A stretch of DNA of 64,000 nucleotides from Zootoca vivipara (Eukaryota). The first letter of the stretch is position 1. The number at the start of each line of letters is the position of its first letter. This document shows positions 5,127-62,332 of this stretch, in pieces. A program made the position numbers and the translations under genes. The notes beneath the pieces are model-generated. The model saw nothing but the letters and a program-made list of their open reading frames with translations, was not told the origin of the DNA and did not search any database. Where the stretch lies: NCBI RefSeq assembly GCF_963506605.1, contig NC_083279.1:101308001-101372000 (forward strand), in the 5' to 3' direction.

Positions 5127-6086
5127 ATGGCTGCTCTCAATGACAGCAGCTTTGACCCCGTCACATTTGTCCTGACCGGCATCCCTGGCATGGAGGAATC
5201 CCACGTGTGGATTTCTGTCCCCTTCTGCCTCATGTACGTGGTGGCCCTCCTGGGGAACTCGTTCCTCCTCTTCCTCATTGCCACGGACCGCAGCCTTCGC
5301 CAGCCCATGTGCCTCTTCCTGGCCATGCTCTCTGTGGCGGACCTCCTGCTGTCCACGGTCACCGTGCCCGAGATGCTGGCCATCTTCTGGTTCGGCTCCA
5401 GAAAGATCTCCTTTGACGCCTGCATTGCCCAGATGTTCTTCACCCACTTCAGCTTCATCGCGGAGTCCACCATCCTGCTGGCCATGGCCTTTGACCGCTA
5501 CGTGGCCATCTGCGACCCGCTGCGCTACATGGCCATCCTGACCCCTTCGGTGATTGGGAAGGTGGCCCTGGCAGCCGTGGTCAGGGGGCTGTTCATCATG
5601 TCCCCACCCATCTTCCTCCTCAAGAGGCTGCCCTACTGCGGCCACAGCACCATGCAGCACACCTACTGCGAACACATGGGCATCGCCCGCCTGGCCTGCG
5701 GAGACATCACCATCAACATCTGGTACGGCTTCACGACCACCCTCCTGTCCTCAGGGGTGGACGTGGTGCTCATTGCCTTGTCGTACGGCTTGATCCTCAA
5801 GGCCGTCTTCCAGCTCTCCTCCAAGGAGGCCCGCCTCAAGGCTCTCCGCACCTGCGGCTCCCACATCTGCATCATCCTGATGTTCTACATGCCCGCCTTC
5901 TTCTCCTTCCTCACCCACCGCTTTGGCCACAACATCCCCAGCTGCATCCACATCCTGCTGGCCAACCTCTATGTCATTGTTCCTCCCATGCTCAACCCCA
6001 TCGTCTATGGGGTGAGAACGAGGCAGATACGGGAGCGAGTCTCCCATGTGTTCTCGCGGACAGGAAGGGGGAGGTGCTGCTGCTAG
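5127..6086 (+). CDS. Class I olfactory receptor, OR52 family (319 aa)
   Basis: [50 protein letters not shown]; pyrimidine-rich acceptor (ctctccctag) about 45 nt upstream of ATG. Confidence 0.96.
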   Translation: MAALNDSSFDPVTFVLTGIPGMEESHVWISVPFCLMYVVALLGNSFLLFLIATDRSLRQPMCLFLAMLSVADLLLSTVTVPEMLAIFWFGSRKISFDACIAQMFFTHFSFIAESTILLAMAFDRYVAICDPLRYMAILTPSVIGKVALAAVVRGLFIMSPPIFLLKRLPYCGHSTMQHTYCEHMGIARLACGDITINIWYGFTTTLLSSGVDVVLIALSYGLILKAVFQLSSKEARLKALRTCGSHICIILMFYMPAFFSFLTHRFGHNIPSCIHILLANLYVIVPPMLNPIVYGVRTRQIRERVSHVFSRTGRGRCCC

Positions 6087-9490: not shown

Positions 9491-9510
9491 CGACCTCAGC
9501 GCTGACATCA
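9491..9510 (+). promoter_or_regulatory. Tandem CRE-like octamers upstream of ubiquilin-like A
   Basis: CGACCTCA-gcgc-TGACATCA about 180 bp before the ATG; same arrangement before the other two ubiquilin genes. Confidence 0.55.
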
Positions 9511-9691: not shown

Positions 9692-11188
9692 ATGGTCGAA
9701 AGCCAGAGAATCCCGGGGGTCGACCTCAGAGCCGCCGAGCCCCAGGTTGTTCGGATCATCGTGAAGACTCCGTGGCAGAAGGAAGAGTTTCTGGTCCACA
9801 GGGATATGTTGGTGCGAGAATTCAAGGAACATGTTGCCAGGCATTTCTCCTCTTCTCCTGACCAAATTGTGCTGGTGTATGTCGGAAGGATCTTGAAAGA
9901 CCACAAGACCCTTGGCCAGCATGGCGTCCACCTAGACCACGACGCAACAGTCTACGTGGTCGTCCGGTCTCCCCGGGGGCGCCCATCCAGGCAGGCTTCC
10001 GCCAGCCCTACCAGCACTGCCCCAGATCAGAAGCCTCCTCGGGGAGGTGCTTTCGCCAGCGACGGCCTCCGGGAGCTGACCGCCAGCCTGGGCCTCAACA
10101 CGGCCAACTTTTCAGAGTTCCAGAGCCAGCTGATGTCCAACCCAGACATGATGGTGCAACTGCTGGAGAACCCCTTTATCCAGAGCAAGCTCTCCAGCCC
10201 TGACCTGATGAAGGAGCTGGTCACCAGCAACCCGCAGGTGCGGCAGGTGATGCAGAAAGCCCCTGAGATCAGCCACGTCTTCAGCTCCCCAGAAGGAATG
10301 AGGTTGGTGGTGGAACTGGCAAGGAACCCAGCGGTTGTGAGGGAGTTCATCAAATCACCTCCCCAGGCTGCCACTTGTCCTGGAAGCGTCCCTGGCGGAG
10401 ACAACAACAGTGTCCTTCAGGGTGCATTCCCTGAGGCACAAAGGGGACTAGGGCAGAAGGCCATTCCCAAGCGCTGTGGGGCAAGCCCCTTGCCAGGATC
10501 CCTGGGGGGCCACCCACCCACCTTTGACCACGGTGAAAGGCTTGAGCGGGCCCGAGAGAGGCTGCCTTCTCCCAGACCTTGGCCTCCAAAGCCTGGTGCC
10601 CAGAACGGCAACGATCCGAGCAACGAGGAAAGCGGCGCCTTCAGAGGAGAGACAGGACAACTCGCCTCGGCTACTGTGAGGAACCTCCTCCACCAAATCA
10701 TAAAGCACCTCATGCAGAACCTGGCATCTGGCAGCCCCTCCAGGAGCAGCCCCAACCCGGAGGTGGTGGCCAAGATGGTCCGCAGGAACACCTCCGTGTC
10801 CAGGAGCCCCCGGGGGCAGGCGGCCCCACAGGTCCCAGACCTCCTCCAGCAGATTCAAAGCACAGACATCCTGTTGGCCAACTGGAGCCCCAAGGAGATC
10901 CAGGGGCTGGTAGAAATCCAGCAGAGGCTGCAGGCCCTCGCCACAGACGAGCCGGCAGCGGAGAGGCGAGGCAGATCCGAGCGGCCTGCGCGGAGGGCGC
11001 ACTCCATCACTTCCCTCTGCGACGTCCTGCCCCCCGTCTCCAGGGCAGGGCGCCAGGATGTCACCGCCCAGCAGATCTTGGAGACTCTGGTGGGCGCTGA
11101 CTTCTTAGCTGGCATGAAGACTGCCAGCCGCCTGCGGGGCTCGTCTGCGCAGCCGTCCTCCAAGCAGAAGCGGACGTACAAGCTCTGA
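9692..11188 (+). CDS. Intronless ubiquilin-like protein A (498 aa): UBL and STI1-like regions, no canonical UBA
   Basis: UBL VRIIVKTPWQKEEF...QIVLVYVGRILKDHKTLGQHG; ubiquilin-typical LGLNTANFSEFQSQLMSNPDMMVQLLENPFIQ and PEISHVF; AATAAA at 11302-11307. Confidence 0.9.
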   Translation: MVESQRIPGVDLRAAEPQVVRIIVKTPWQKEEFLVHRDMLVREFKEHVARHFSSSPDQIVLVYVGRILKDHKTLGQHGVHLDHDATVYVVVRSPRGRPSRQASASPTSTAPDQKPPRGGAFASDGLRELTASLGLNTANFSEFQSQLMSNPDMMVQLLENPFIQSKLSSPDLMKELVTSNPQVRQVMQKAPEISHVFSSPEGMRLVVELARNPAVVREFIKSPPQAATCPGSVPGGDNNSVLQGAFPEAQRGLGQKAIPKRCGASPLPGSLGGHPPTFDHGERLERARERLPSPRPWPPKPGAQNGNDPSNEESGAFRGETGQLASATVRNLLHQIIKHLMQNLASGSPSRSSPNPEVVAKMVRRNTSVSRSPRGQAAPQVPDLLQQIQSTDILLANWSPKEIQGLVEIQQRLQALATDEPAAERRGRSERPARRAHSITSLCDVLPPVSRAGRQDVTAQQILETLVGADFLAGMKTASRLRGSSAQPSSKQKRTYKL

Positions 11189-11880
11189 GGCGGAGGGAGA
11201 GGACGGAAGCTGAGCCATCCGCAGAAGGGAGGCTGGGCGGACTCCTGCAGCTGCTGTGCCGATGCGGGAGCTCTGCAAAGGCGTGGATTACATGGTTTGT
11301 GAATAAAAGGCTTTAAATCTTTCAAAAAGTCTCCTCTGTTGGCTTGGGGTAGGGAGGTGTGCCCTCCAAGCACCCCAATTTCCCAGGGACGGTCCTGGAA
11401 TTAGGAAAGTCACCCCAGCTTCTGATTGGATCCCAGAATGTCCCTAGTGCCCCTGCCGGTGCTGTCACCACCAAGCCCATTGCCTCTCTGTGGCCTCTCC
11501 TCCCTTGGGTAGATCATGGCAGCTGCTGAAGAGCGGGGGAGGATGAAGAGAGGCCACCACTGCTAAGGCCCTGCCTGCATGATGCACCAGCTCTGGGGTG
11601 CAGGCAGAAGGCAGAGCCGCCCTGGGCATAAAGAAATGGGGAGTGGAGCACAAGGAGTCTTGACTTTTTTATTTAAAAAAAAGGAAAGGAAAGAAATGAT
11701 TTGTGTGTCCGCATCTAAATTTATTTATCAGTGTGCGTTTTTCTTTTTGTAAATCTACCAAAGAATAAAATGGGGATCAATGGGTTTTCTCACGACGGTA
11801 GAGGGTGTGTGTGTACTGTGTCCTGCTGCTGGTGGGGGGATGCTTGCAAGCTTCCTCCTTCAGATAGGAAATGCTTGGGG

Positions 11881-11882
<2 letters not shown>

Positions 11883-11926
<44 letters not shown>

Positions 11927-12007
11927 TATTATTTATACCGCGCCCATCTGGCCAGGTTCCCCCAGCCACTCTGGGCAGCTTCCAACAAAATATTAAAATA
12001 CAGATAT
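11883..12007 (-). mobile_element. L2 LINE 3' end with (TAA)n tail
   Basis: tttataccgcgcccatctggccaggttcccccagccactctgggc matches the 3' end of the L2 at 43895-44765. Confidence 0.8.
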
Positions 12008-12390
12008 CCCATTGCCTCTCTGTGGCCTCTCCTCCCTTGGGTATATATGGGATATCAACGAGGGTCATTTGGGTGTGTGTGAGAAAAGTCCCTATTTTCA
12101 TCTGAGGAATGTTGGGGGTATGGTATGGATGCAATTTGTTCTCGGTTTTCTTGTTTCATCTTTTTGTAAAATGTTTTGAGGGTGGGTTTAAAAACAACAA
12201 CCACCACAACGATCAAGCGGTGTACATTTTTTTTTAAAATGAAACAAACCATTAAACAAAGTCTATAAGAACTTAAAAAGCTCCTGCTGGGCCAGGCCAA
12301 AGAGGGGGCCATCTAGTCCAGCAGCCTCGTCTCAGCGGCCAAAGTGCTTCGGCTCCTAGGAGCTGGGAATCCCTATGGCTTCAAGGCTGC

Positions 12391-25429: not shown

Positions 25430-25523
25430 CAAAATAAAAAAATTCTTTCAGTAGCACCTTAAAGACCAACTAAGTTTTTATTTTGGTATGAGCTTTCGTG
25501 TGCATGCACACTTCTTCAGATAC
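25430..25523. mobile_element. Penelope-like element terminal fragment
   Basis: cagtagcaccttaaagaccaactaag...gagctttcgtgtgcatgcacacttcttcag; related fragment at about 53012-53085. Confidence 0.65.
25486..25523 (-). ncRNA. Minimal type I hammerhead ribozyme motif (Penelope type)
   Basis: Minus strand reads GUAU-CUGAAGA-A-GUGUG-CAUG-CACAC-GAAA-GCUC-AUAC: stem I GUAU/AUAC, both core boxes, stem II, palindromic AGCU in place of stem III. Confidence 0.65.
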
Positions 25524-26186
25524 TTCTTCTTGGATGTTAGGGGTTAGCTTTCTGCCAGCCGCTTTGGGCACAACTCACCATGGGAAAGCGGCATGCAAGT
25601 AAAATCAAGCAATCCAACAAGCCTAGCAGAGGTTGCCTGGCCTAATAAGCAAATTCCCAAGAACAGAAGAGGAGCGCTGCTCTTCTCACAGTGTTCTCAA
25701 AGCGTCCTGTTCTCACGGCGACCACCCAGAGCCCCGTGGAAAACCTGCAAGCAAAACTCCAGCACAGGAGCAGCAACGCTCTCCTCTCCTGTGGCTTCCA
25801 GCAACTGGGATCCAGAAACATTGCTGCCCTCAAAGGTGGAGGACAGAGTACAGCCATCTTGGCTGCTCACCACTGAGAGCCCTCAACTCCTCCACAAATT
25901 CATCTAATCCTCTTTTCAAGCCATCCATGTTGGTGGCCGTCACTGCCTCCTGTGGCAGGGAGTTCCACAGTTTAAATCTGTGCTGTGTGAAGAAGGACTT
26001 TCTTTTCTCTGTCCTGAATCTTCCAGCGTCCAGGTCGTTGGATGTCTTTGAATTGAGCAACTTAAAGGCGCTCCCCCACCCCACCCTGCATCACCCCAGT
26101 TAAGTGCACCACTGCACTCCCCTTTATTGGGGAGGGGGGCACCCATGGAGGCCTTGCCCACCGGGGCCTCCCCTCCCAGTTCTCTG

Positions 26187-26206
26187 TGAGGTCAGCGGTG
26201 ACCTCA
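26187..26206 (+). promoter_or_regulatory. Paired CRE-like octamers upstream of ubiquilin-like C
   Basis: TGAGGTCA-gcgg-TGACCTCA within the palindrome ctgtgaggtca..tgacctcacag. Confidence 0.55.
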
Positions 26207-26532
26207 CAGTCCCGGCAGCTTCACAGAAAGGCCAGGTCCTCTGGCAGCAGCAGAGGGGAGAAGAGGAAAATGAAGGTGCCTGCCAGGTTGTGAGCAAGCG
26301 GAAGAAGAAGGCAACATCTCGCTGTTATGTGCGCTCTGGCCTTGGCTAGTGTTGAGACAAAGGGGGGCAGCAGCAGACCACTGGCCCCTTCCCACCTCTC
26401 GCATCCCCTACGGGAACAAGTGGCGGCAGCAGCGGCGGCAGCAGCAGCAGCAGCAGCATCGCCGCCACACCGGAAGGAAAGGAAGACGCCCCTCTTTGCT
26501 CCTTCTTCCTGAACCTCTGCTCCTCAGCAGCC

Positions 26533-28377
26533 ATGTCGGAGAGCAAGAAGCCCCACGGGGCTGCCGCCGGCACCCGTGTCATCAAGGTGACCGTCAAGAC
26601 CCTCAAGCGCAAGGAGCACTTTGAGGTGGCTGAGAGCACCCTTGTGCAGGACTTCAAAAAGCTCATCTCTGAGCGCTTCAAGATGCCCCTGGAGCAGCTG
26701 TCGCTCATCTTTGCTGGCGAGATCCTCAAGGACCAGGACACTCTGGCACAGCACAAGATTGTCAGTGGGTCCAAGGTGCACCTCTTCATCAAGTCGCAGA
26801 GGAGGCTGCCGGGGAACCCCGTGCCCTCCCCGGGAAACACCGGCCCCGCTGCCTTCCTGGCCGTGCCACCCGCAAGCATGCTGCTCTCCAGCGAGGCCTC
26901 CTCGGAGCATAGCCTTGAGCTGTCCGAGTGGAACAACCAGCCGGAAGAGCTGATGGCTTCCTGCCACAAGCTGGTGGCGCAGACCATGGAGAACCTCTTG
27001 CTTCAGATGGTCACTCTGAACCTGGATGCCTCCACCTTGAACAACAACCCGCTTCTCTTGGGCTTCCTTGTTGGCATCACTGGCATGAACGTTCTGGGCC
27101 TGAGCTCCATGGACGTCTCTGACATTGTGGGTGAGGCCCATGAACAGGACATGACCCGCCAGGAGCTCATCAGCGAGGTGATGCAGCACCCTTTTGTGCA
27201 GAACCTCTTTGGCGACACAGAGCAGGTCAGGCAGATGATCATGTCCGTCCCGCAGGTGCAGCAGCTGGCCGAGCAGAACCCCGAGATCAACCACATCCTC
27301 AACAACTCCGAGTTCCTGCGGGAGATGATCGACGTGGCCACCAGCCCGGCGGTGATGGACGAGATCATCAGGAACCACGACCGAGCCCTCAGCAACCTCG
27401 AAAGCATCCCAGGTGGGTACAGTGCTTTGCAGCAGCTCTACAATGACATAGAGGCCCCCATGCTGAACGCGGTCCAAGCCCAGTTCCAGGGCAACACGTT
27501 TGCCCCGTCAGAGAACAAGCCCCCTTCTGGGGGGATCAGCCCTCTGGCCCGGACAGAAAACAGGGAGCCCCTGCCAAACCCCTGGGCTCCTCAGTCCAAC
27601 AACAGTGGCGGCGACAATTTCTGCAACGGTGACCTCAATGGTACCAATAACGATGCTGGTCAGGGCTACATCCTGCTTGCTTTAGGCCCTGGAGTCCAGC
27701 CTGGGCTGAGCAAGTCCGAAAGCATCCAGAACATGGTTCACCAACTCACGGAGAACCTGGAGTTCATGCAGAACATGTCCAATGCCCTCTCGAAGCCCGA
27801 TGGGCCTACTCAGTTATTCCTCAGCCATTGCAACTCCCCCGAGAGTAACGATGCTTCTCTGCCTCAAGGGTGGGTGCAGCAGCTCCCTGCCAAACTGGAG
27901 AGGTCAGAGGCGGCTGCCCTGCTGACCAACCCCAGAGCGGTCCAGGCTCTCCTCCAGCTGCAGATGAGCCTGCTGACCCTGACCAGAGAAGTGCCTGACT
28001 TCCTCCAAGCCTTGACGGACCCGGACGTTGAGCCCGAGAGCATGGAAGACTCCGATGAGGGAGAGAGCCCGTCCTCGGAAGCAGGGAGCCTCATCTCCGC
28101 TGATGAAAGCCTGGAGTTGGAAAGCAGCGAATCCAAAGCAGAAGAGAGAAGACGGGGAAGAAGAAGAAGAAGAGGAGGAAGAGAGGAGGAGGAGGAGGAG
28201 GAAGATGAAGACGAAGAAATGGATCAGCAAGCTCCAGTGGTCCTCTATCAGATGCAGCTGCAGCAGCTCCAAATGATGGGCTTCCAGAACCAGGAACTGA
28301 ACCTGCAAGCTTTAATTGACACAGATGGAGATATTGGTGCAGCGGTTGAAAAGCTTACGAACTCTCGTGCATCCTAG
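26533..28377 (+). CDS. Intronless ubiquilin-like protein C (614 aa; UBL-STI1-UBA; UBQLN3-like by position)
   Basis: UBL IKVTVKT...[17 protein letters not shown]; [24 protein letters not shown]; [12 protein letters not shown]; [37 protein letters not shown]; gccATG start; ATTAAA at about 28550. Confidence 0.95.
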
Positions 28378-28685
28378 CAACAGATTTACCTTTGCCTCTT
28401 GTAGGGTCACCTGACACACTAAAGTCAGCATGGTGGATATTACAATGGCCTCGCTTCAGTGCTCCTTTACTCAGGCTGGGTTTGCTTAGGGGTGAGGGGG
28501 CTCTGCTTCTAAGAGTCGGGGAAGGAAGAACCAGCGGGGGATGCCTTACATTAAAAAACCATCCGCAGCAGATGCCTGAAAGCCACCGAGGAAGTAGGTG
28601 TCTGTTGCATCATCACCTTCGGGGCCCCTTCTGGCTCCCTCGGCCTTAGGGGGATCCACCCGAGCTGTGCAGAGAGCCCTTAGCC

Positions 28686-28821
28686 CAGGCATCCCCAAAC
28701 TGTGGCCCTCCAGATGTTTTGGCCTACAACTCCCATGATCCCTAGCTAACAGGACCAATGGTCAGGGATGATGGGGATTGTAGTCCAAAACATCTGGAGG
28801 GCCGAAGTTTGGGGATGCCTG
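28686..28821. mobile_element. hAT MITE (136 bp)
   Basis: TIR caggcatccccaaact; 8-bp TSD CCTTAGCC. Confidence 0.9.
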
Positions 28822-30262
28822 CCTTAGCCCCTCTTGGCCTCCTGCTGGCCTCCTGGAACTTGGTGGACAGTGCTAGAGGGGATTGGGGCACAGGCTCTGC
28901 TTGACCCAGGATGTCCTCCAGCACTTTGGGACTCCAACTGGGAAGCTGTGGTGCTGGTCTCAGCCGGAGCTCTGGAGCTGCCCCTGGCCGCCTCTTTCTC
29001 TCTCCTTCTGCTTGGCTTATTTCTTTCTGGAACAGAGCACTAAGCTACCCAGGGCCAAGAGTTTCAGTGGGCCTAGTGGGCAAGGGCTTCAGTTCCTCTT
29101 GCCCACATCCCTTTGGGGGGCTGTGTGGCTGGACACACAAAGCTGCTGCAGTGAGCAGCTTAGCTCCCTCAGCTGTCTTAGTTTGCTGGTGCCTTTTCCA
29201 CGCTGCAAAACTCCCTGCTTGTGCAGACCCTCTGCGGGGGCTCAGGACTGGGTGGGGAGCTCAGCGCCAACCAGGGTCTGGGCTTTGAACATCTTCCCAT
29301 GAAAGGGGGGTGGGGTGGGCATATCCTTTGGGCAAGTCCCGCTCATGTTGGCATCTCTGCACAGAAAGAAAAGCCCCCAACGATTCACAAAAAGGGGTCT
29401 GGGCCCCCAGCTGGGCTCCTGTGATGCTCCATCCAAGGCAGAACCAGCCGATCCATGTAACATATGCTTGAAGGAGGCTTTTGATAAACTGGAGTGGCCT
29501 TTGCTGTGAGCGCCACTGCTTTCTCTTGCAGCGGACAATTCCTGGGTATCAGATTGGGCTTCTTAATCTGTTTTTTCGCTTTGGACTGTAGGCAGTCATG
29601 TGGCGTCAATCCTCAAGTTGCATGACAGGTCAGAGCGTGCGTGTCACAGGCAGTCAGGTGGTGCTTATTTCCCACAGGTGGGTGAGAAAAGGATGCTGGA
29701 CCAGATGAGTTATTGGCCTGATCCAACACAACTCTGTAGCTCAGTGGTAGAACATCTGCCCCACGTTCCATGCCCGGCCCCTTTGGGTAGGCTTGGGAGA
29801 GACTCCTGTATGAAATTGGAGAGAGTCGCTGCCAGTCGGCGTAGACAATAATGAGCTAGAGGGACCCACTGGTCTGGCTCAGTATAAAGTAACTTCCTAT
29901 ATCCCTATGGATCAGGTCAGTGGCCCATCTAGTCCAGCATCCTGTTCTCACAGTGGCCAGCCAGATACCTGCAAGAAACCCACAAGCAGGAGCCGACCAC
30001 GAGAGCCCTCTCCCTGCCTGGGGTTTCCAGCAACTGGCATTCAGAAGCATTGTTGCCTCCAACTCACAGCCACTGACAGCCATCTGCTCCAGGAATTTGA
30101 CTAACCCTCTTTTAAAGCAACTACTGTAGGTTGGTGCCCATCTTCCCTGTTTAGGGAAGCTTTTAATGTTTAATGGATTTCTGTATTTTAGAATTTGTTT
30201 TTTTGGAAGCCGCCCAGAGTGGCTGGGGGAACCCGGCCAGATGGGCGGGGTATAAATAATAA

Positions 30263-30312
<50 letters not shown>

Positions 30313-31012
30313 CTCTGCCTCCTGCGGCAGCAAGTTCCATAGTTCAGCATGAAGAAGAACTTTCTTTTGTCCTGAATCTCCCAGCATCCCACTTTATTGG
30401 ATGTGCAGGTTTGCTATGTTATGCAGCTGTCTGATACCCTGATGCCTATACCCTGATGCCTCCCAACTGCAGCCACTCTGGCGTCACGACCATTGCTCTG
30501 CAGTTCATCCTGGGCAACGGTGGCTCTCACACACATGCCTGGTGGGGTGGTCCTATCCCTGCTTGCCTGCGGACAGCCCCTCCACCCTGAAACAGCTGCT
30601 TCCCAGAAACAGCAGCCTACATAACAAAGATACGAACATGGGGGGGGGGACAGACCCAGCAACAAGCCCAGGTGCCAACATGGTCGCCATATCCACTTAG
30701 GCAGGCAAAGGCGATGCTTTTACAAGAGCATTTAGAACGGCAGAGTTGCAAGGGACCCCAAGGTTCATCTAGTCCAGCCCCCTGCAATTCCAGGGCCAGG
30801 GATGCACCTGCAAACAGCAGCCTCCTTCATTCTACATAGAGCAAACAGGCCAGTCCCTGCCCTAAAAAACAAATGCACCCCAAACTTCATAGGAGGTATC
30901 GATCTGTTCATTTCATAAAATCTACACACCACTTGATTGTAATAAAACAAACCCCAAACTGGTTTACAAAAGATAAAACAATAAAATCAAGCAAAAATTA
31001 CAACCCTAACAC

Positions 31013-35500: not shown

Positions 35501-36445
35501 TCAGAACTTCCTCCGGTGGAAAGCCTTTCCAAATGCCTTGAGGATCTCCTTGGTCTTGATGCTGTAGATGATGGGGTTCAGCAGCGGAGGGACCAGGAGA
35601 TAGACGTTGGCCATCAGGGAGTGAACCAGAGGGGGAGCATTCCTGCCAAACCGGTACACCATAGACAGGCCGATCATTGGGGTGTAATAGATCACGACGG
35701 CACAGATGTGGGAGACGCAGGTGTTCAGGGCCTTGAGGCGCCCTTCCTTGGAGGCCATGCTCAGCACGGTCTTGAGGATCATCGTGTAGGACAGGACAAT
35801 GAACAGGGAATCGAGGCCGAATGTACAGAGCAAAACAAAGAGCCCATAGAGGCTGTTGACGGTGGTGTCTGCACAAGGGAGCCGGATTAAATTGGGGTGC
35901 AGACAGTAAGGATGAGCAAGCACATTGGACCTGCAAAACGGCAGCCTCCTCAGGAGAAGAGGCAGCGGGGCCAGCAGGATAATGCTCTTTGCGGCAATCC
36001 CTGAGCCTATCATGGCAATCCTGAAGTTGGTCAGGATGGTGGTGTATTGCAGAGGGTTGTAAATGGCTATGAAGCGGTCCAGGGCCATCGCCCAGAGGAC
36101 CCCTGAGTCCATGATGGAGAAGCAGTGGATGAAGAACATCTGGCTGAGGCACGCATCCAGCCCAATCTCCCTGGAATCAAACAGGAGGACTCTCAGCACT
36201 GTGGGGAGGGTAGACAGGGAGACCCCCAGCTCACTCACAGCCAGCATGCAGAGGAAGAGGTACATGGGCTTGTGGAGGCTCCGATCCTTCACAATCACTA
36301 GGAATACAGCACTATTCCCCAAGACAGCAACCGCGTAGGCAAAGCAGAAAGGGATGGAGACCCCGATATTTCCGGCCTGCAGTTCTGGGATGCCCGTGAG
36401 GAGGAACGTAGAATGGAGGGAGCTTTGGTTACTGAGCAGCTCCAT
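35501..36445 (-). CDS. Class I olfactory receptor, OR51 family (314 aa)
   Basis: LHKPMYLFLCML, MALDRFIAIYNPLQY, HPYCLHP, KALNTCVSHICAV, PPLLNPIIYSIKTKEI. Confidence 0.95.
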   Translation of the reverse strand: MELLSNQSSLHSTFLLTGIPELQAGNIGVSIPFCFAYAVAVLGNSAVFLVIVKDRSLHKPMYLFLCMLAVSELGVSLSTLPTVLRVLLFDSREIGLDACLSQMFFIHCFSIMDSGVLWAMALDRFIAIYNPLQYTTILTNFRIAMIGSGIAAKSIILLAPLPLLLRRLPFCRSNVLAHPYCLHPNLIRLPCADTTVNSLYGLFVLLCTFGLDSLFIVLSYTMILKTVLSMASKEGRLKALNTCVSHICAVVIYYTPMIGLSMVYRFGRNAPPLVHSLMANVYLLVPPLLNPIIYSIKTKEILKAFGKAFHRRKF

Positions 36446-41556: not shown

Positions 41557-42504
41557 TCAGAACTTCTTATGAGAAAAAAGCCTGCCCAGGGCTCTGCGGA
41601 TCTCTTTGGTTTGGATGCTGTAGATGATGGGGTTCAGAATCGGAGGAACCAGGAGGTAGATGTTGGCCATCAGTGAGGGCAGCATCGGGGAATTGTGCTT
41701 GCCAAACCTGTGTGCCACGGACACACCGATCATTGGGGTGTAATAGAGCACAACGGCACAGATGTGGGAGACGCAGGTGTTCAGGGCCTTGAGGCGGCCT
41801 TCCTTCGAGGCCATGCTCACCACGGTCTTGAGGATCATCATGTAGGACAAGACGATGCACAAGGAATCAAGGCCAAATGTGGAAACTACAAAAAACAGGC
41901 CATAGAAGCTGTTGACAGTGGTGTCCGCACAAGGGAGATGGATCAAATTGGGGTGCAGACAGTAAGGGTGAGCAAGGGTGGTAGACTTGCAAAATGGCAG
42001 CCTCCTTAGGAGGAGAGGCATTGGGACCATCAGGAGAACACTCCTCAAGGCAATCCCAGATCCCAACAAAATGATCCTAAGGTTTGTCAGGATGGTGGTG
42101 TATTGCAGGGGGTTGTAAATGGCTATGAAGCGGTCCAGGGCCATCGCCCAGAGGACCCCTGAGTCCATACAGGAGAAGCAATGGATGAAGAACATCTGGC
42201 TGAGGCACGCATCCAGCCCAATCTCCTTGGCATCAAACAGGAAGACTCCCAGCACTGTGGGGAGGGTAGAGATGGAGACCCCCAGCTCACTCACAGCCAG
42301 CATGCAGAGGAAGAGGTACATGGGCTTATTATGTAAGGTCTGATCCTTCATGATCACAAGGAGAACAATGCCATTCCCCAAGACAGCAATGACGTAGACA
42401 AAGCAGAAAGAGAAGGAGACCCAGTTATTTCTGTTCTCTAGTCCTGGGATGCCAGTAAGGACGAATGTGGGATGGAAGATGCTTTGGTTATTTTGTGGTC
42501 CCAT
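41557..42504 (-). CDS. Class I olfactory receptor, OR51 family (315 aa)
   Basis: Paralogue of 35501-36445; start MGPQNNQS follows the acceptor at 42538-42539. Confidence 0.95.
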   Translation of the reverse strand: MGPQNNQSIFHPTFVLTGIPGLENRNNWVSFSFCFVYVIAVLGNGIVLLVIMKDQTLHNKPMYLFLCMLAVSELGVSISTLPTVLGVFLFDAKEIGLDACLSQMFFIHCFSCMDSGVLWAMALDRFIAIYNPLQYTTILTNLRIILLGSGIALRSVLLMVPMPLLLRRLPFCKSTTLAHPYCLHPNLIHLPCADTTVNSFYGLFFVVSTFGLDSLCIVLSYMMILKTVVSMASKEGRLKALNTCVSHICAVVLYYTPMIGVSVAHRFGKHNSPMLPSLMANIYLLVPPILNPIIYSIQTKEIRRALGRLFSHKKF

Positions 42505-47580: not shown

Positions 47581-48528
47581 TCAGATCAGTCTCTGTTGAG
47601 ACAAAAACCTTCCAAAGGCCTTGCGGATCTCTTTGGTTTTGATACTGTAGATGATGGGGTTCAGAATTGGAGGAACCAGGAGATAGATGTTGGCCATCAG
47701 AGAGTGCAGCATTGGAGAATTATGCCTGCCAAACCTGTGCGCCATGGAAACACCGATCATTGGGGTGTAATAGAGCACGACAGCACAGATGTGGGAGACG
47801 CAGGTGTTCAGGGCCTTGAGACGGCCTTTCTTGGAGGCCATGCTCAGCACGGTCTTGAGAATCATCACGTAGGAGAAGACGATGCACAAGGAATCGAGGC
47901 CAAATGTGGAGAGCACAACAAACAGACCAGTTTGGTTATTGATGGTTGTGTCTGCACAGGGGAGCTGGATTAAATTGGGGTGCAGACAGTAAGGATGAGC
48001 AAGCACATTGGACCTGCAAAACGGCAGACTCCTCAGGAGAAGAGGCAGTGGGGTCATGAGGAGAACGCTTCTCATGGCAATCCCAGATCCCAACAAAATA
48101 ATCCTAACGTTTGTCAGGATGGTGGTGTATTGCAGAGGGTTGTAAATGGCTATGAAGCGGTCCAGGGCCATCGCCCAGAGGACCCCTGAGTCCATGATGG
48201 AGAAGGAGTGGATGAAGAACATCTGGCTGAGGCACGCATCCAGCCCAATCTCCCTGGCATCAAACAGGAAGACGCCCAGCACTGTGGGGAGGGTAGAGAT
48301 GGAGACCCCCAGCTCACTCACAGCCAGCATGCAGAGGAAGAGGTACATGGGCTTATGCAAGGTCTGATCCTTCACGATCACGAGGAGAACAATGCCATTC
48401 CCCAAGACAGCAACCGCATAGGCAAAGCAGACAGGGATGGAGACCCCGATAGATCTGGCCTGCAGTCCTGGGATGCCAGTGAGGAGGAATGTGGGGTGGA
48501 AGGTGCTTTGGTTACTGAACAGCTCCAT
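47581..48528 (-). CDS. Class I olfactory receptor, OR51 family (315 aa)
   Basis: Third intact paralogue with the same motifs; acceptor at 48562-48563. Confidence 0.95.
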   Translation of the reverse strand: MELFSNQSTFHPTFLLTGIPGLQARSIGVSIPVCFAYAVAVLGNGIVLLVIVKDQTLHKPMYLFLCMLAVSELGVSISTLPTVLGVFLFDAREIGLDACLSQMFFIHSFSIMDSGVLWAMALDRFIAIYNPLQYTTILTNVRIILLGSGIAMRSVLLMTPLPLLLRSLPFCRSNVLAHPYCLHPNLIQLPCADTTINNQTGLFVVLSTFGLDSLCIVFSYVMILKTVLSMASKKGRLKALNTCVSHICAVVLYYTPMIGVSMAHRFGRHNSPMLHSLMANIYLLVPPILNPIIYSIKTKEIRKAFGRFLSQQRLI

Positions 48529-52352: not shown

Positions 52353-52966
52353 TCAGAACTTCCGTAGACACAAAAATCTGCCCAGGGCTTTGAGGATCTC
52401 TTTGGTTTTGATGCTGTAGATGATGGGGTTCAGAATCGGAGGAACCAGGAGGTAGATGTTGGCCATCACCGAGGGCAGCATTGGAGAATTGTGCTTGCTG
52501 AATCTGTTTGCAATAGCCAAACCAATCACGGGAGTATAATAGAGCACGACGGCACAGATGTGGGAGACGCAGGTGCTCAAGGCTTTCAGGTGCCCTTTCT
52601 GGGAGGTTATGTTCAGCACAGTCTTGAGATTCATCACATCGGACAAGAGGATACACAAGGAATCAAACCCAAGTGTGGAAACGACGCAAAGCAGGCCAGT
52701 TTAGCTGTTCCATGTCTGTGCATGGAAGCCGGATTAAATCGGGGTGCATGCAGTAAGGGTGAGTGAGCACATTGGACCTGCAGAATGGCAGCCTCCTTAG
52801 CAGAACAGGGAGTGGGGCCATCAGGAGACCACTTCTCACGGCAATCCCTAATCCTATCCACATAATCCTAAAGTTTGTCAGGATGGTGGTGTATTGCAGG
52901 GGGTTGTAAATGGCCATGAAGCGGTCCAGGGCCATCGCCCAGAGGACCCCTGACTCCATGCTGGAG
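52353..52966 (-). pseudogene. OR51 pseudogene (5' third missing, frameshift and premature stop)
   Basis: Begins at MESGVLWAMALDRF; frameshift and TAA near 52700-52712; C-terminus KALSTCVSH...PPILNPIIYSIKTKEI retained. Confidence 0.92.
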
Positions 52967-53011
52967 TCTCCTTTTTCCTGTCTTAAGTTCACATTCTCAC
53001 TTCATTTTTAG

Positions 53012-55105: not shown

Positions 55106-56038
55106 TCACGAAAACATCTTGGCGATCCCCTTCCGGATCTCTTTGGTTTTGACGCTGTAGATGATGGGGTTGAGCAGCGGGGGGACGAAGAGGTAGACGT
55201 TGGACATCATGATGTGGACCACGGGAGGGGCGCCCTTCCCAAATCTGTGCAGGACAGAGACAGCGATGATGGGGACGTAGAAAGAGAGGACCGCGCAGAT
55301 GTGCGAGACACAGGTGTTGAGGGCCTTGCGCCGCTGCTCCCGTGATGCGATGCTCAAGACGGTCTTCAGGATCATGGTGTAGGACAGAACAATGAAGGTG
55401 GAGTCCAGGCCGTAGGTGAAGAGGACGGCAAAGAAGCCATAGATGTTGTTGACAGTGATGTCGGCACACGCCAGGCGCATCATGTCCGGGTGGAGGCAGT
55501 AGGAGTGGGACAGGATGTTGGACTTGCAAATGGGCAGCCGCTTGATGAGGAACGGGAAGGGGAAGAGCATGACAGTGCTCTTCAGGACAATGGCCAAGCC
55601 GATCCGGGCGATCCGGGGGTTGGTCAAGGTGGACGAGTACCGGAGAGGGTTGCAGATGGCGACAAAGCGGTCGAAGGACATGGCTAGCAGGATCCCGGAC
55701 TCCATGAAGGAGAAGGAGTGGAGGAAGAACATCTGGGCCAGGCAAGCGTCAAAGAGGACATCACTGAGGCCAAAGCAGAAGATGGCGAGCACCGTTGGGA
55801 GGGTGGAGAGGGAAACCCCCAAATCGTTGAAGGACAGCATGCACAGGAAGAAATACATGGGCTCGTGGAGCCGCCGGTCCCTCCTGACGATGGCGAGGAT
55901 GGTGCAGTTGCCAGTGATGGAGGCAGCGTACAGCAAGCAGAAGGGGATGGCAATCCACAAGTGGAACTGCTCCAGGCCTGGGAAGCCGGTGAGGTGGAAG
56001 GTGGCAGGCTGGAAGCGGGTGAGGTTGAGCTCTTCCAT
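55106..56038 (-). CDS. Class I olfactory receptor, OR51I-like (310 aa)
   Basis: FHLTGFPGLE, LHEPMYFFLCMLSFNDLGVS, MSFDRFVAICNPLRY, HSYCLHPDMMRLAC, MMSNVYLFVPPLLNPIIYS; acceptor ccttcttgtttcctttccag at about 56066. Confidence 0.95.
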   Translation of the reverse strand: MEELNLTRFQPATFHLTGFPGLEQFHLWIAIPFCLLYAASITGNCTILAIVRRDRRLHEPMYFFLCMLSFNDLGVSLSTLPTVLAIFCFGLSDVLFDACLAQMFFLHSFSFMESGILLAMSFDRFVAICNPLRYSSTLTNPRIARIGLAIVLKSTVMLFPFPFLIKRLPICKSNILSHSYCLHPDMMRLACADITVNNIYGFFAVLFTYGLDSTFIVLSYTMILKTVLSIASREQRRKALNTCVSHICAVLSFYVPIIAVSVLHRFGKGAPPVVHIMMSNVYLFVPPLLNPIIYSVKTKEIRKGIAKMFS

Positions 56039-62203: not shown

Positions 62204-62332
62204 TCAGTGGTACTGGCGGGTCAGGGCGTGCGCCACCACGTTGGTGAGCTTCTGGAAGGCGGCGTGGGCGGCCGGAGTGAACTCCTTCCCGAAGTGGGAG
62301 GCCAAGCAGATGAGGAGGATGTTGCCCAGGAG
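62204..62332 (-). CDS. HBB: Beta-type haemoglobin, exon 3 (exons 1-2 lie beyond the window)
   Basis: Exactly 129 nt after the acceptor tcttctcttgcag: [42 protein letters not shown]. Canonical beta-globin exon 3 length and C-terminal YH; the specific paralogue is not determined. Confidence 0.95.

Follow-up and report, generated by a model that had tools for sequence, protein, structure and literature searches.

Three intronless ubiquilin genes in the globin-linked olfactory receptor cluster of a lizard are sauropsid members of the UBQLN3/UBQLNL group

When did the intronless ubiquilin genes that lie among olfactory receptor (OR) genes beside the beta-globin cluster arise, and are they an innovation of mammals? 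The question is raised by a 64-kb stretch of contig NC_083279.1 from Zootoca vivipara, a lacertid squamate (the whole stretch is called the window here), in which three single-exon ubiquilin paralogues, named U1, U2 and U3 in this work, are encoded on the same strand. The only family-wide ubiquilin study that we found in the literature, Marin 2014 (PMC4230246), describes UBQLNL, UBQLN3 and UBQLN5 as tandem, testis-specific genes born after the mammal-sauropsid split and ties this mammal-specific expansion to eutherian sperm biology, so that the original prediction was correct in stating that the cluster is generally regarded as a mammalian expansion. Our results demonstrate that U1, U2 and U3 are sauropsid additions to the known UBQLN3/UBQLNL group, and the published view of a mammal-specific expansion is thereby revised. 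The three genes are very probably old, constrained genes that occupy the locus orthologous to that of UBQLN3 and UBQLNL. Their positions and domains are as follows.

9692-11188, + strand: U1, single-exon ubiquilin paralogue of 498 aa with a UBL and an STI1-type domain and without a UBA
18280-19626, + strand: U2, single-exon ubiquilin paralogue of 448 aa with a UBL and an STI1-type domain, truncated before the UBA
26533-28377, + strand: U3, single-exon ubiquilin paralogue of 614 aa with a UBL, an STI1-type domain and a UBA that has the MGF loop

The open reading frame (ORF) listing, the translations, and Pfam and tblastn searches all bore out that these are three long, open, single-exon ubiquilin ORFs in the same orientation. 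A UBL domain (Pfam PF00240) was recognized in U1, U2 and U3 with E-values of 1e-10, 8e-15 and 1e-16, respectively, and the top matches of these domains in the PDB were the UBL structures of UBQLN1, UBQLN2 and UBQLN3. The ubiquilin-1-like (STI1-type) domain PF23195 was found in all three with E-values of 3e-26, 1e-11 and 3e-26 and bit scores of 91, 45 and 92, each exceeding the cut-off of 27. The UBA of U3 gave a weak, sub-threshold score in Pfam (18.7 bits), and in a phmmer search of the PDB it matched the UBA structures of UBQLN1, UBQLN4, UBQLN2 and UBQLN3 with E-values between 6e-10 and 6e-9 (6e-10 for UBQLN1, entry 2jy5). For U1 and U2, the PDB sequence search returned no UBA match and the alignment shows truncation, and these two proteins are therefore UBA-less derivatives. 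None of the relatives of U1 or U2 carries a precomputed UBA domain, and several relatives of U3 do. In U2, a further in-frame ATG at 18229 would give a protein of 465 aa, and this is the annotated start in Lacerta and Podarcis. The C-terminus of squamate U1 (window 11090-11185) ends in a conserved basic tail, LRGSSAQPSSKQKRTYKL, in place of a UBA; this tail is not present in the U1 proteins of turtles, alligator and birds. Lacertid U3 has an enlarged low-complexity tract, first Arg-rich and then Glu-rich, directly N-terminal of the UBA (window 28146-28223), where other squamate U3 proteins have a shorter acidic run alone.

UBQLN1 is a gene of many exons. Each of the three ORFs aligned in tblastn to bird UBQLN1 as one unbroken high-scoring segment pair, from residue 15 to about residue 476, and such a continuous match to a multi-exon gene indicates that the coding regions of U1, U2 and U3 are intronless. 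Pairwise identity among the three is 24-29%, in agreement with the strong mutual divergence originally claimed, and identity to bird UBQLN1 and snake UBQLN4 is just 28-39%. A tblastn search of the window with several ubiquilin queries found no ubiquilin locus beyond U1, U2 and U3.

To learn how old these genes are and whether they have been maintained, sets of orthologues were collected by word-index protein searches. Full-length relatives of U3 were found in all squamate groups (62-97% identity), in turtles (~49%), in alligator (45%) and in many birds (40-46%). Those of U1 came from about 20 squamates (50-95%), from turtles (~40%), and from alligator and Rhea, and those of U2 from squamates (49-94%), turtles (46%), alligator (45%) and one tinamou (39%). 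The presence of full-length orthologues in squamates, turtles, crocodilians and birds means that U1, U2 and U3 are neither recent retrocopies nor pseudogenes. In about 20 squamate species, from geckos to snakes, and in archelosaurs, the ORFs (448-614 codons) have been kept at full length. Conservation was measured as the fraction of orthologues that match the residue of the window, using about 20 squamate species per gene and bins of 30 residues; it reached 0.75-0.92 in the UBL, in the STI1 domain and in a C-terminal NPKA.QA..Q.EQGLQ.L motif, and fell to 0.38-0.50 in the least conserved bins. From reading frames that have stayed open from geckos to snakes, together with conservation focused on the domains, we argue that U1, U2 and U3 are under apparent purifying selection. 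The expectation that the genes would be old and probably maintained by selection was thus upheld, and they are present in other reptiles as well.

A reading of the ORFs as decaying or non-functional relics that have stayed open by chance could draw on the lack of U3 reads in three RNA runs (see below), on the missing UBA of U1 and U2, and on the fast evolution of the linkers. We consider it very improbable: the ORFs are intact across the squamates and archelosaurs named above, their conservation is concentrated on the UBL, the STI1 domain and the C-terminal motif, the genes share a conserved promoter module, and poly(A) signals follow 114-524 bp past the stop codons (at 11302, 20150 and 28550).

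The relationship of the three genes to other ubiquilins was examined by phylogenetic analysis. Mammalian sequences were obtained through a profile search of 1.84 billion representatives and cluster look-ups, and comprised UBQLN3 from manatee, two rodents and wombat, an echidna 'ubiquilin-3-like' protein, and UBQLNL from two marsupial lineages and mustelids. The main tree was inferred with IQ-TREE under LG+C20 with posterior mean site frequencies (PMSF) from 46 rows and 573 columns, and its support is given as ultrafast bootstrap (UFBoot)/SH-aLRT values. In this tree U1, U2 and U3 each formed a clade with support of 100/100 that contained squamates, turtles, a crocodilian and birds, which makes the triplication at least as old as crown sauropsids. 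U1, U2, U3, UBQLN3 and UBQLNL together formed one clade to the exclusion of UBQLN1, UBQLN2 and UBQLN4 (100/99 in the main tree, 99 in a quick tree, and 65 with a second taxon set, from which three long-branch rows had been removed and to which eight other rows had been added). This clade was placed on the UBQLN1 side of the split between UBQLN1 and UBQLN4 (100/99), and UBQLNL has been described as probably derived from UBQLN1 (PMC4230246).

These trees bear on the possibility that U1, U2 and U3 arose recently and independently, in squamates only, as retrocopies of UBQLN1 or UBQLN4 and came to lie in the OR cluster by chance. Their intronless coding regions and their database name, 'ubiquilin-1-like', would suit such an origin. 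The maximum-likelihood (ML) phylogeny proposed as a check, however, places them inside neither the squamate/sauropsid UBQLN1 nor the UBQLN4 clade; orthologues of each occur in turtles, crocodilians and birds; their identity to UBQLN1 and UBQLN4 is low; and the region is colinear with that of human UBQLN3 and UBQLNL (PMC3484066). The probability of recent retrocopies is, in our view, close to nil.

The genomic neighbourhood provided a second line of evidence. The window contains seven intact OR genes and one broken one, named either after members of their 90%-identity clusters or by their identity to the ORs so named, and it ends in part of a globin gene.

178-1131, + strand: OR52-like OR gene (52Z1P/52H1/52B2-like; Pfam 7tm_4, cluster names)
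5127-6086, + strand: OR52B2-like OR gene (Pfam, cluster names)
14980-15933, + strand: OR52B2-like OR gene between U1 and U2 (Pfam, cluster names)
35501-36445, - strand: OR gene of the OR51I2-like group, the first OR past U3 (Pfam; 76-81% identity to the 51I2-like ORs)
41557-42504, - strand: OR51I2-like OR gene (Pfam, cluster names)
47581-48528, - strand: OR gene of the OR51I2-like group (Pfam; together with the OR at 35501, 76-84% identity to the 51I2-like gene)
52353-52992, - strand: frame-broken OR pseudogene of the OR51 group, flanked by two intact OR51-like genes
55106-56038, - strand: OR51I1-like OR gene (cluster names)
62204-62332, - strand: exon 3 of a beta-type globin (CAG acceptor, LLGN...FGKEFTP...RQYH, stop; Pfam Globin, 23 bits)

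Between the OR52-like and the OR51-like group, identity is only 42-50%, and from this and the OR names the OR52/OR51 boundary falls at U3, with U1 and U2 interspersed among OR52-like genes. Both the position at this boundary and the linkage to globin in a squamate had been predicted, and the cluster names and the globin exon confirm them. The three ubiquilin genes are all transcribed in the direction of the globin, to which U3, the one with a UBA, lies closest. Read from the globin, the order in the lizard is globin, 51I1-like, the OR51-group pseudogene, three 51I2-like genes, U3, U2, 52B2-like, U1, 52B2-like and 52H1/Z1-like. The human order in a table for this ENCODE region (PMC3484066) is HBB ... 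HBE1, OR51B4, OR51B2, OR51B5, OR51B6, OR51M1, OR51Q1, OR51I1, OR51I2, OR52D1, UBQLN3, UBQLNL, OR52H1, OR52B6, TRIM6. The two regions are colinear, and U3 followed by U2 parallels UBQLN3 followed by UBQLNL; at least the founder gene is therefore older than the mammal-sauropsid split. Indirect evidence points to linkage of the genes in other sauropsids. In alligator, Eublepharis and Elgaria, the orthologues of U1, U2 and U3 lie on one chromosome-scale record each, in Malaclemys and Rhea those of U1 and U3 share a chromosome record, and in Phrynocephalus the orthologues of U1, U2 and U3 have the locus tags _019600, _019610 and _019619.

Whether the separate paralogues are as old as the founder bears on their pairing with mammalian genes in the trees. 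In the main tree, U2 was sister to UBQLNL (96/93; 94 with the second taxon set), and U3 was sister to UBQLN3 plus the echidna gene (93/86; 97 with the second set). FastTree and the quick search reproduced both pairs. U1 grouped with the U2/UBQLNL pair (83/79), and it had no mammalian partner in the trees, which lack UBQLN5. A clade of U1, U2 and U3 was recovered in none of the main, FastTree, quick, partition and second-set trees. When the alignment was divided, the UBL partition united U2 with UBQLNL (93) and the STI1 partition united U3 with UBQLN3 (61). In the alignment, moreover, turtle and alligator U2 and marsupial UBQLNL have near-identical motifs that differ from UBQLN1: the first is QLVLVFVGRILKD, where UBQLN1 has QLVLIFAGKILKD, and the second, in the C-terminal part, is AP.LLPWLTP.LWGLG, where UBQLN1 has APGLIPGFSPGLGGLG. 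The order of U3 and U2 along the chromosome fits the same pairings. On these comparisons, the most likely mammalian orthologues are UBQLN3 for U3 and UBQLNL for U2.

The echidna (Tachyglossus aculeatus) 'ubiquilin-3-like' protein (P0280; also P0264) grouped with therian UBQLN3 with support of 100/100. According to Marin 2014 (PMC4230246), monotremes have UBQLNL only; the position of the echidna gene makes UBQLN3 at least as old as crown mammals.

The three genes also share sequence upstream of their start codons. Octamers resembling the cAMP response element (CRE), defined as TGACATCA or TGACCTCA with at most one mismatch, occur 190-350 bp 5' of the three start codons in the following arrangements.

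9491-9510, + strand: pair of CRE-like octamers, CGACCTCA and TGACATCA, 12 bp apart (9491 and 9503), about 190 bp upstream of the U1 ATG
17929-17960, + strand: three CRE-like octamers with a 12-bp period (17929, 17941 and 17953) upstream of U2
26187-26206, + strand: inverted pair of CRE-like octamers, TGAGGTCA and TGACCTCA, 12 bp apart (26187 and 26199), about 330 bp upstream of the U3 ATG

The 64 kb contain four CRE-like pairs with this 12-bp spacing, all of them upstream of U1, U2 and U3, against 0.33 expected from Markov simulations. The perfect CRE, TGACGTCA, is absent from the window, and the variants TGACATCA and TGACCTCA are all that occur. Apparently the promoter module has been retained while the paralogous proteins lost most of their similarity, and, as a motif, it suggests co-regulation by a factor of the CREB/CREM/ATF type.

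Taken as a whole, we find it fairly probable that U1, U2 and U3 are functional, selected members of the UBQLN3/UBQLNL group that descend from one ancient UBQLN1-derived copy by tandem duplication of amniote age, with a function in the testis by inference. Under this explanation, the founder of the group would have been one intronless UBQLN1 copy, most likely made by retrocopying, that inserted between OR52 and OR51 genes next to beta-globin before the mammal-sauropsid split and was duplicated in tandem around the origin of amniotes. U1 would represent a third old lineage, whose mammalian counterpart either was lost or is UBQLN5. That the duplications themselves are older than the mammal-sauropsid split, with U3 corresponding to UBQLN3 and U2 to UBQLNL, is favoured and not settled. 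From its domains, U3 would be a complete shuttle factor that uses its UBL to dock on the proteasome, its STI1-type region to hold hydrophobic clients and its UBA to bind polyubiquitin. Having no UBA, U1 and U2 would still bind the proteasome and clients but not ubiquitin chains, and could serve as ubiquitin-independent holdases or as competitors. The promoter motif and analogy to the genes of mammals suggest that the three may be co-regulated and expressed, most likely, in post-meiotic male germ cells; on this analogy we give a role of U1, U2 and U3 in the testis an even chance.

Several observations weigh against this explanation. Loss of introns is the sole evidence for an origin by retrocopying; a poly(A) remnant or target-site duplications are not expected to persist for ~300 million years. 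The full UBQLN5 sequence was not among the best 150 representatives of the profile search and is missing from every tree. The C-terminal-half partition weakly united UBQLN3 with UBQLNL (58), within U2, in conflict with the other partitions. In a crude count of exclusive shared residues, UBQLN3 and UBQLNL had 12 in common, U3 and UBQLN3 six, and U2 and UBQLNL four, and no residue state was exclusive to U1, U2 and U3 together; unequal group sizes and the small number of mammalian rows bias this count, which for this reason was not used as evidence either way. In approximately unbiased (AU) tests with the first taxon set, neither a mammals-only clade (11.5 log-likelihood units worse, p = 0.148) nor a sauropsid-only clade (13.1 units worse, p = 0.15) was rejected. 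With the second taxon set, the sauropsid-only clade was rejected (24.4 units worse, p = 0.0215); all of these p-values are optimistic because the groups were named after the tree had been seen. Finally, RNA depth over U3 was zero along the whole gene in three RNA-seq runs of the same species, of unstated tissue and with about 6% of each read (positions 24400-30399), and the reads in its flanks came from dispersed repeats only, which shows no more than that U3 lacks broad, high expression and has no bearing on testis.

A rival explanation is parallel expansion, in which the amniote ancestor had one intronless ubiquilin at this locus that gave rise to U1, U2 and U3 in sauropsids and to UBQLNL, UBQLN3 and UBQLN5 in mammals, and in which the cross-lineage pairs of the trees are artefacts of long branches or convergence. 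Consistent with it are the AU results of the first taxon set, the weak grouping of UBQLN3 with UBQLNL in the C-terminal partition, the 12 derived residues exclusive to these two, and the mammal-specific tandem duplications proposed by Marin 2014 (PMC4230246). It is nevertheless opposed by the failure of every analysis to recover U1, U2 and U3 as a clade and by the lack of any residue state exclusive to them, by the rejection of the sauropsid-only clade (p = 0.02) once the long-branch rows were dropped, by a gene order that agrees with the tree pairs (U3 and UBQLN3 by the OR51I genes, then U2 and UBQLNL), and by the motifs, foreign to UBQLN1, that are near-identical in alligator and turtle U2 and marsupial UBQLNL. 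The residues shared by UBQLN3 and UBQLNL could have come from gene conversion between adjacent mammalian copies. Parallel expansion thus appears unlikely. The original prediction had left two options, a cluster as old as the amniote ancestor and a parallel expansion of one ancestral retrogene; this pair of options fits our data, and colinearity and the ML pairs favour the first of them, but the AU tests do not reject the second consistently.

Under the favoured explanation of amniote-age duplication, a more specific reconstruction can be proposed tentatively, and we place it somewhat below an even chance: the amniote ancestor would have had, in tandem where OR52 meets OR51 beside beta-globin, at least three intronless, UBQLN1-derived ubiquilins with a shared promoter of paired CRE-like sites; all three would have survived in sauropsids over more than 300 million years, two of them becoming UBA-less; and mammals would have kept UBQLN3 and UBQLNL, with the third lost or reshaped into UBQLN5.

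Comparison with the known ubiquilins showed both likeness and difference. U3 has the same layout of UBL, STI1-type domain and UBA as UBQLN3 (614 against ~650 aa), is its sister in the ML trees and, like it, is the ubiquilin nearest to the OR51I genes and globin. Human UBQLN3 has a single coding exon. The two proteins differ in that their identity is only ~39% over the N-terminal 60%, and in two features of U3 that UBQLN3 lacks, a segment (ELMASC...NLDAST) of ~40-50 residues ahead of the STI1 domain and an acidic tract ahead of the UBA. U2 resembles UBQLNL in being its sister (96/93), in being the second ubiquilin from the globin side in both lineages, and in the UBL and C-terminal motifs common to both. 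Marsupial and mustelid UBQLNL, however, retain the UBA, whereas sauropsid U2 has lost it, the protein of turtles and alligator ending at the UBA boundary and that of squamates before it, and the lizard has an OR52 gene between U2 and U1.

As the third gene of the mammalian tandem array (PMC4230246), UBQLN5 (mouse 4931431F19Rik) could be the counterpart of U1. Its PDB entries cover the UBL and the UBA only (1wx8 and 1vej), and its UBL scored about equally with U1 (51.8 bits), U2 (60.0) and U3 (50.7).

Marin 2014 (PMC4230246) also described a few divergent sequences from reptiles and birds, termed 'UBQLN6', as a separate sauropsid birth retained in a handful of species. This 'UBQLN6' has diverged strongly and combines a UBL with a UBA, and since only U3 among the three paralogues has both domains, U3 is probably Marin's 'UBQLN6', matched by domain description. 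In that study (PMC4230246), 'UBQLN6' is patchy and unrelated to the UBQLNL group, whereas U3 occurs in all sauropsid groups, at the UBQLN3/UBQLNL locus and with two further paralogues. A functional analogy alone is offered by Drosophila CG31528, a divergent duplicate of a housekeeping ubiquilin that is described as testis-specific (PMC4230246) and has an independent origin.

These findings make it most likely that the genes of the UBQLN3/UBQLNL group originated in the amniote ancestor, and they weaken explanations based on features of eutherian sperm only. The gain is one of interpretation and not of a new kind of gene, because NCBI annotations already carry the genes as 'ubiquilin-1-like'. 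U1 and U2 are natural UBA-less ubiquilins, and the conserved promoter module offers a second experimental handle. If both the amniote age of the trio and the shared promoter hold true, what is now taken for a 'mammal-specific' ubiquilin system of spermatids would be an ancestral germline proteostasis module of amniotes.

Some sauropsids have further ubiquilins of this kind. At least one agamid has a fourth, very divergent ubiquilin (Phrynocephalus JRQ81_019626, P0361), on the same chromosome as U1, U2 and U3 and within 26 locus tags of them, and two unnamed sequences (P0369 and P0230) cluster with it; the lacertid window has no counterpart. In Gopherus flavomarginatus, a 544-aa, long-branch 'ubiquilin-1-like' protein (P0274) that is neither U1, U2 nor U3 branched close to the base of the U-group in the FastTree analysis and could be a further old paralogue. 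A tblastn search with the iguanian fourth paralogue and the Gopherus copy as queries found no fourth ubiquilin locus in the window. Elgaria multicarinata has three U3-like proteins on one chromosome (P0006, P0014 and P0033), a sign that U3 may have been duplicated within the anguid lineage. One bird gene model has the U3 orthologue fused to an OR domain.

Between U2 and U3, an ORF of 270 codons (21694-22506, + strand) was rejected as a gene; it encodes low-complexity S/F/L/P sequence from a CT-rich simple repeat and has no Pfam match. Exons 1 and 2 of the beta-globin gene lie outside the window, beyond a repeat-bearing intron, and the 3' end of exon 3 faces the ubiquilin/OR side. As the human beta-like globins are transcribed away from the UBQLN3 side, the lizard globin appears to be inverted relative to the human genes.

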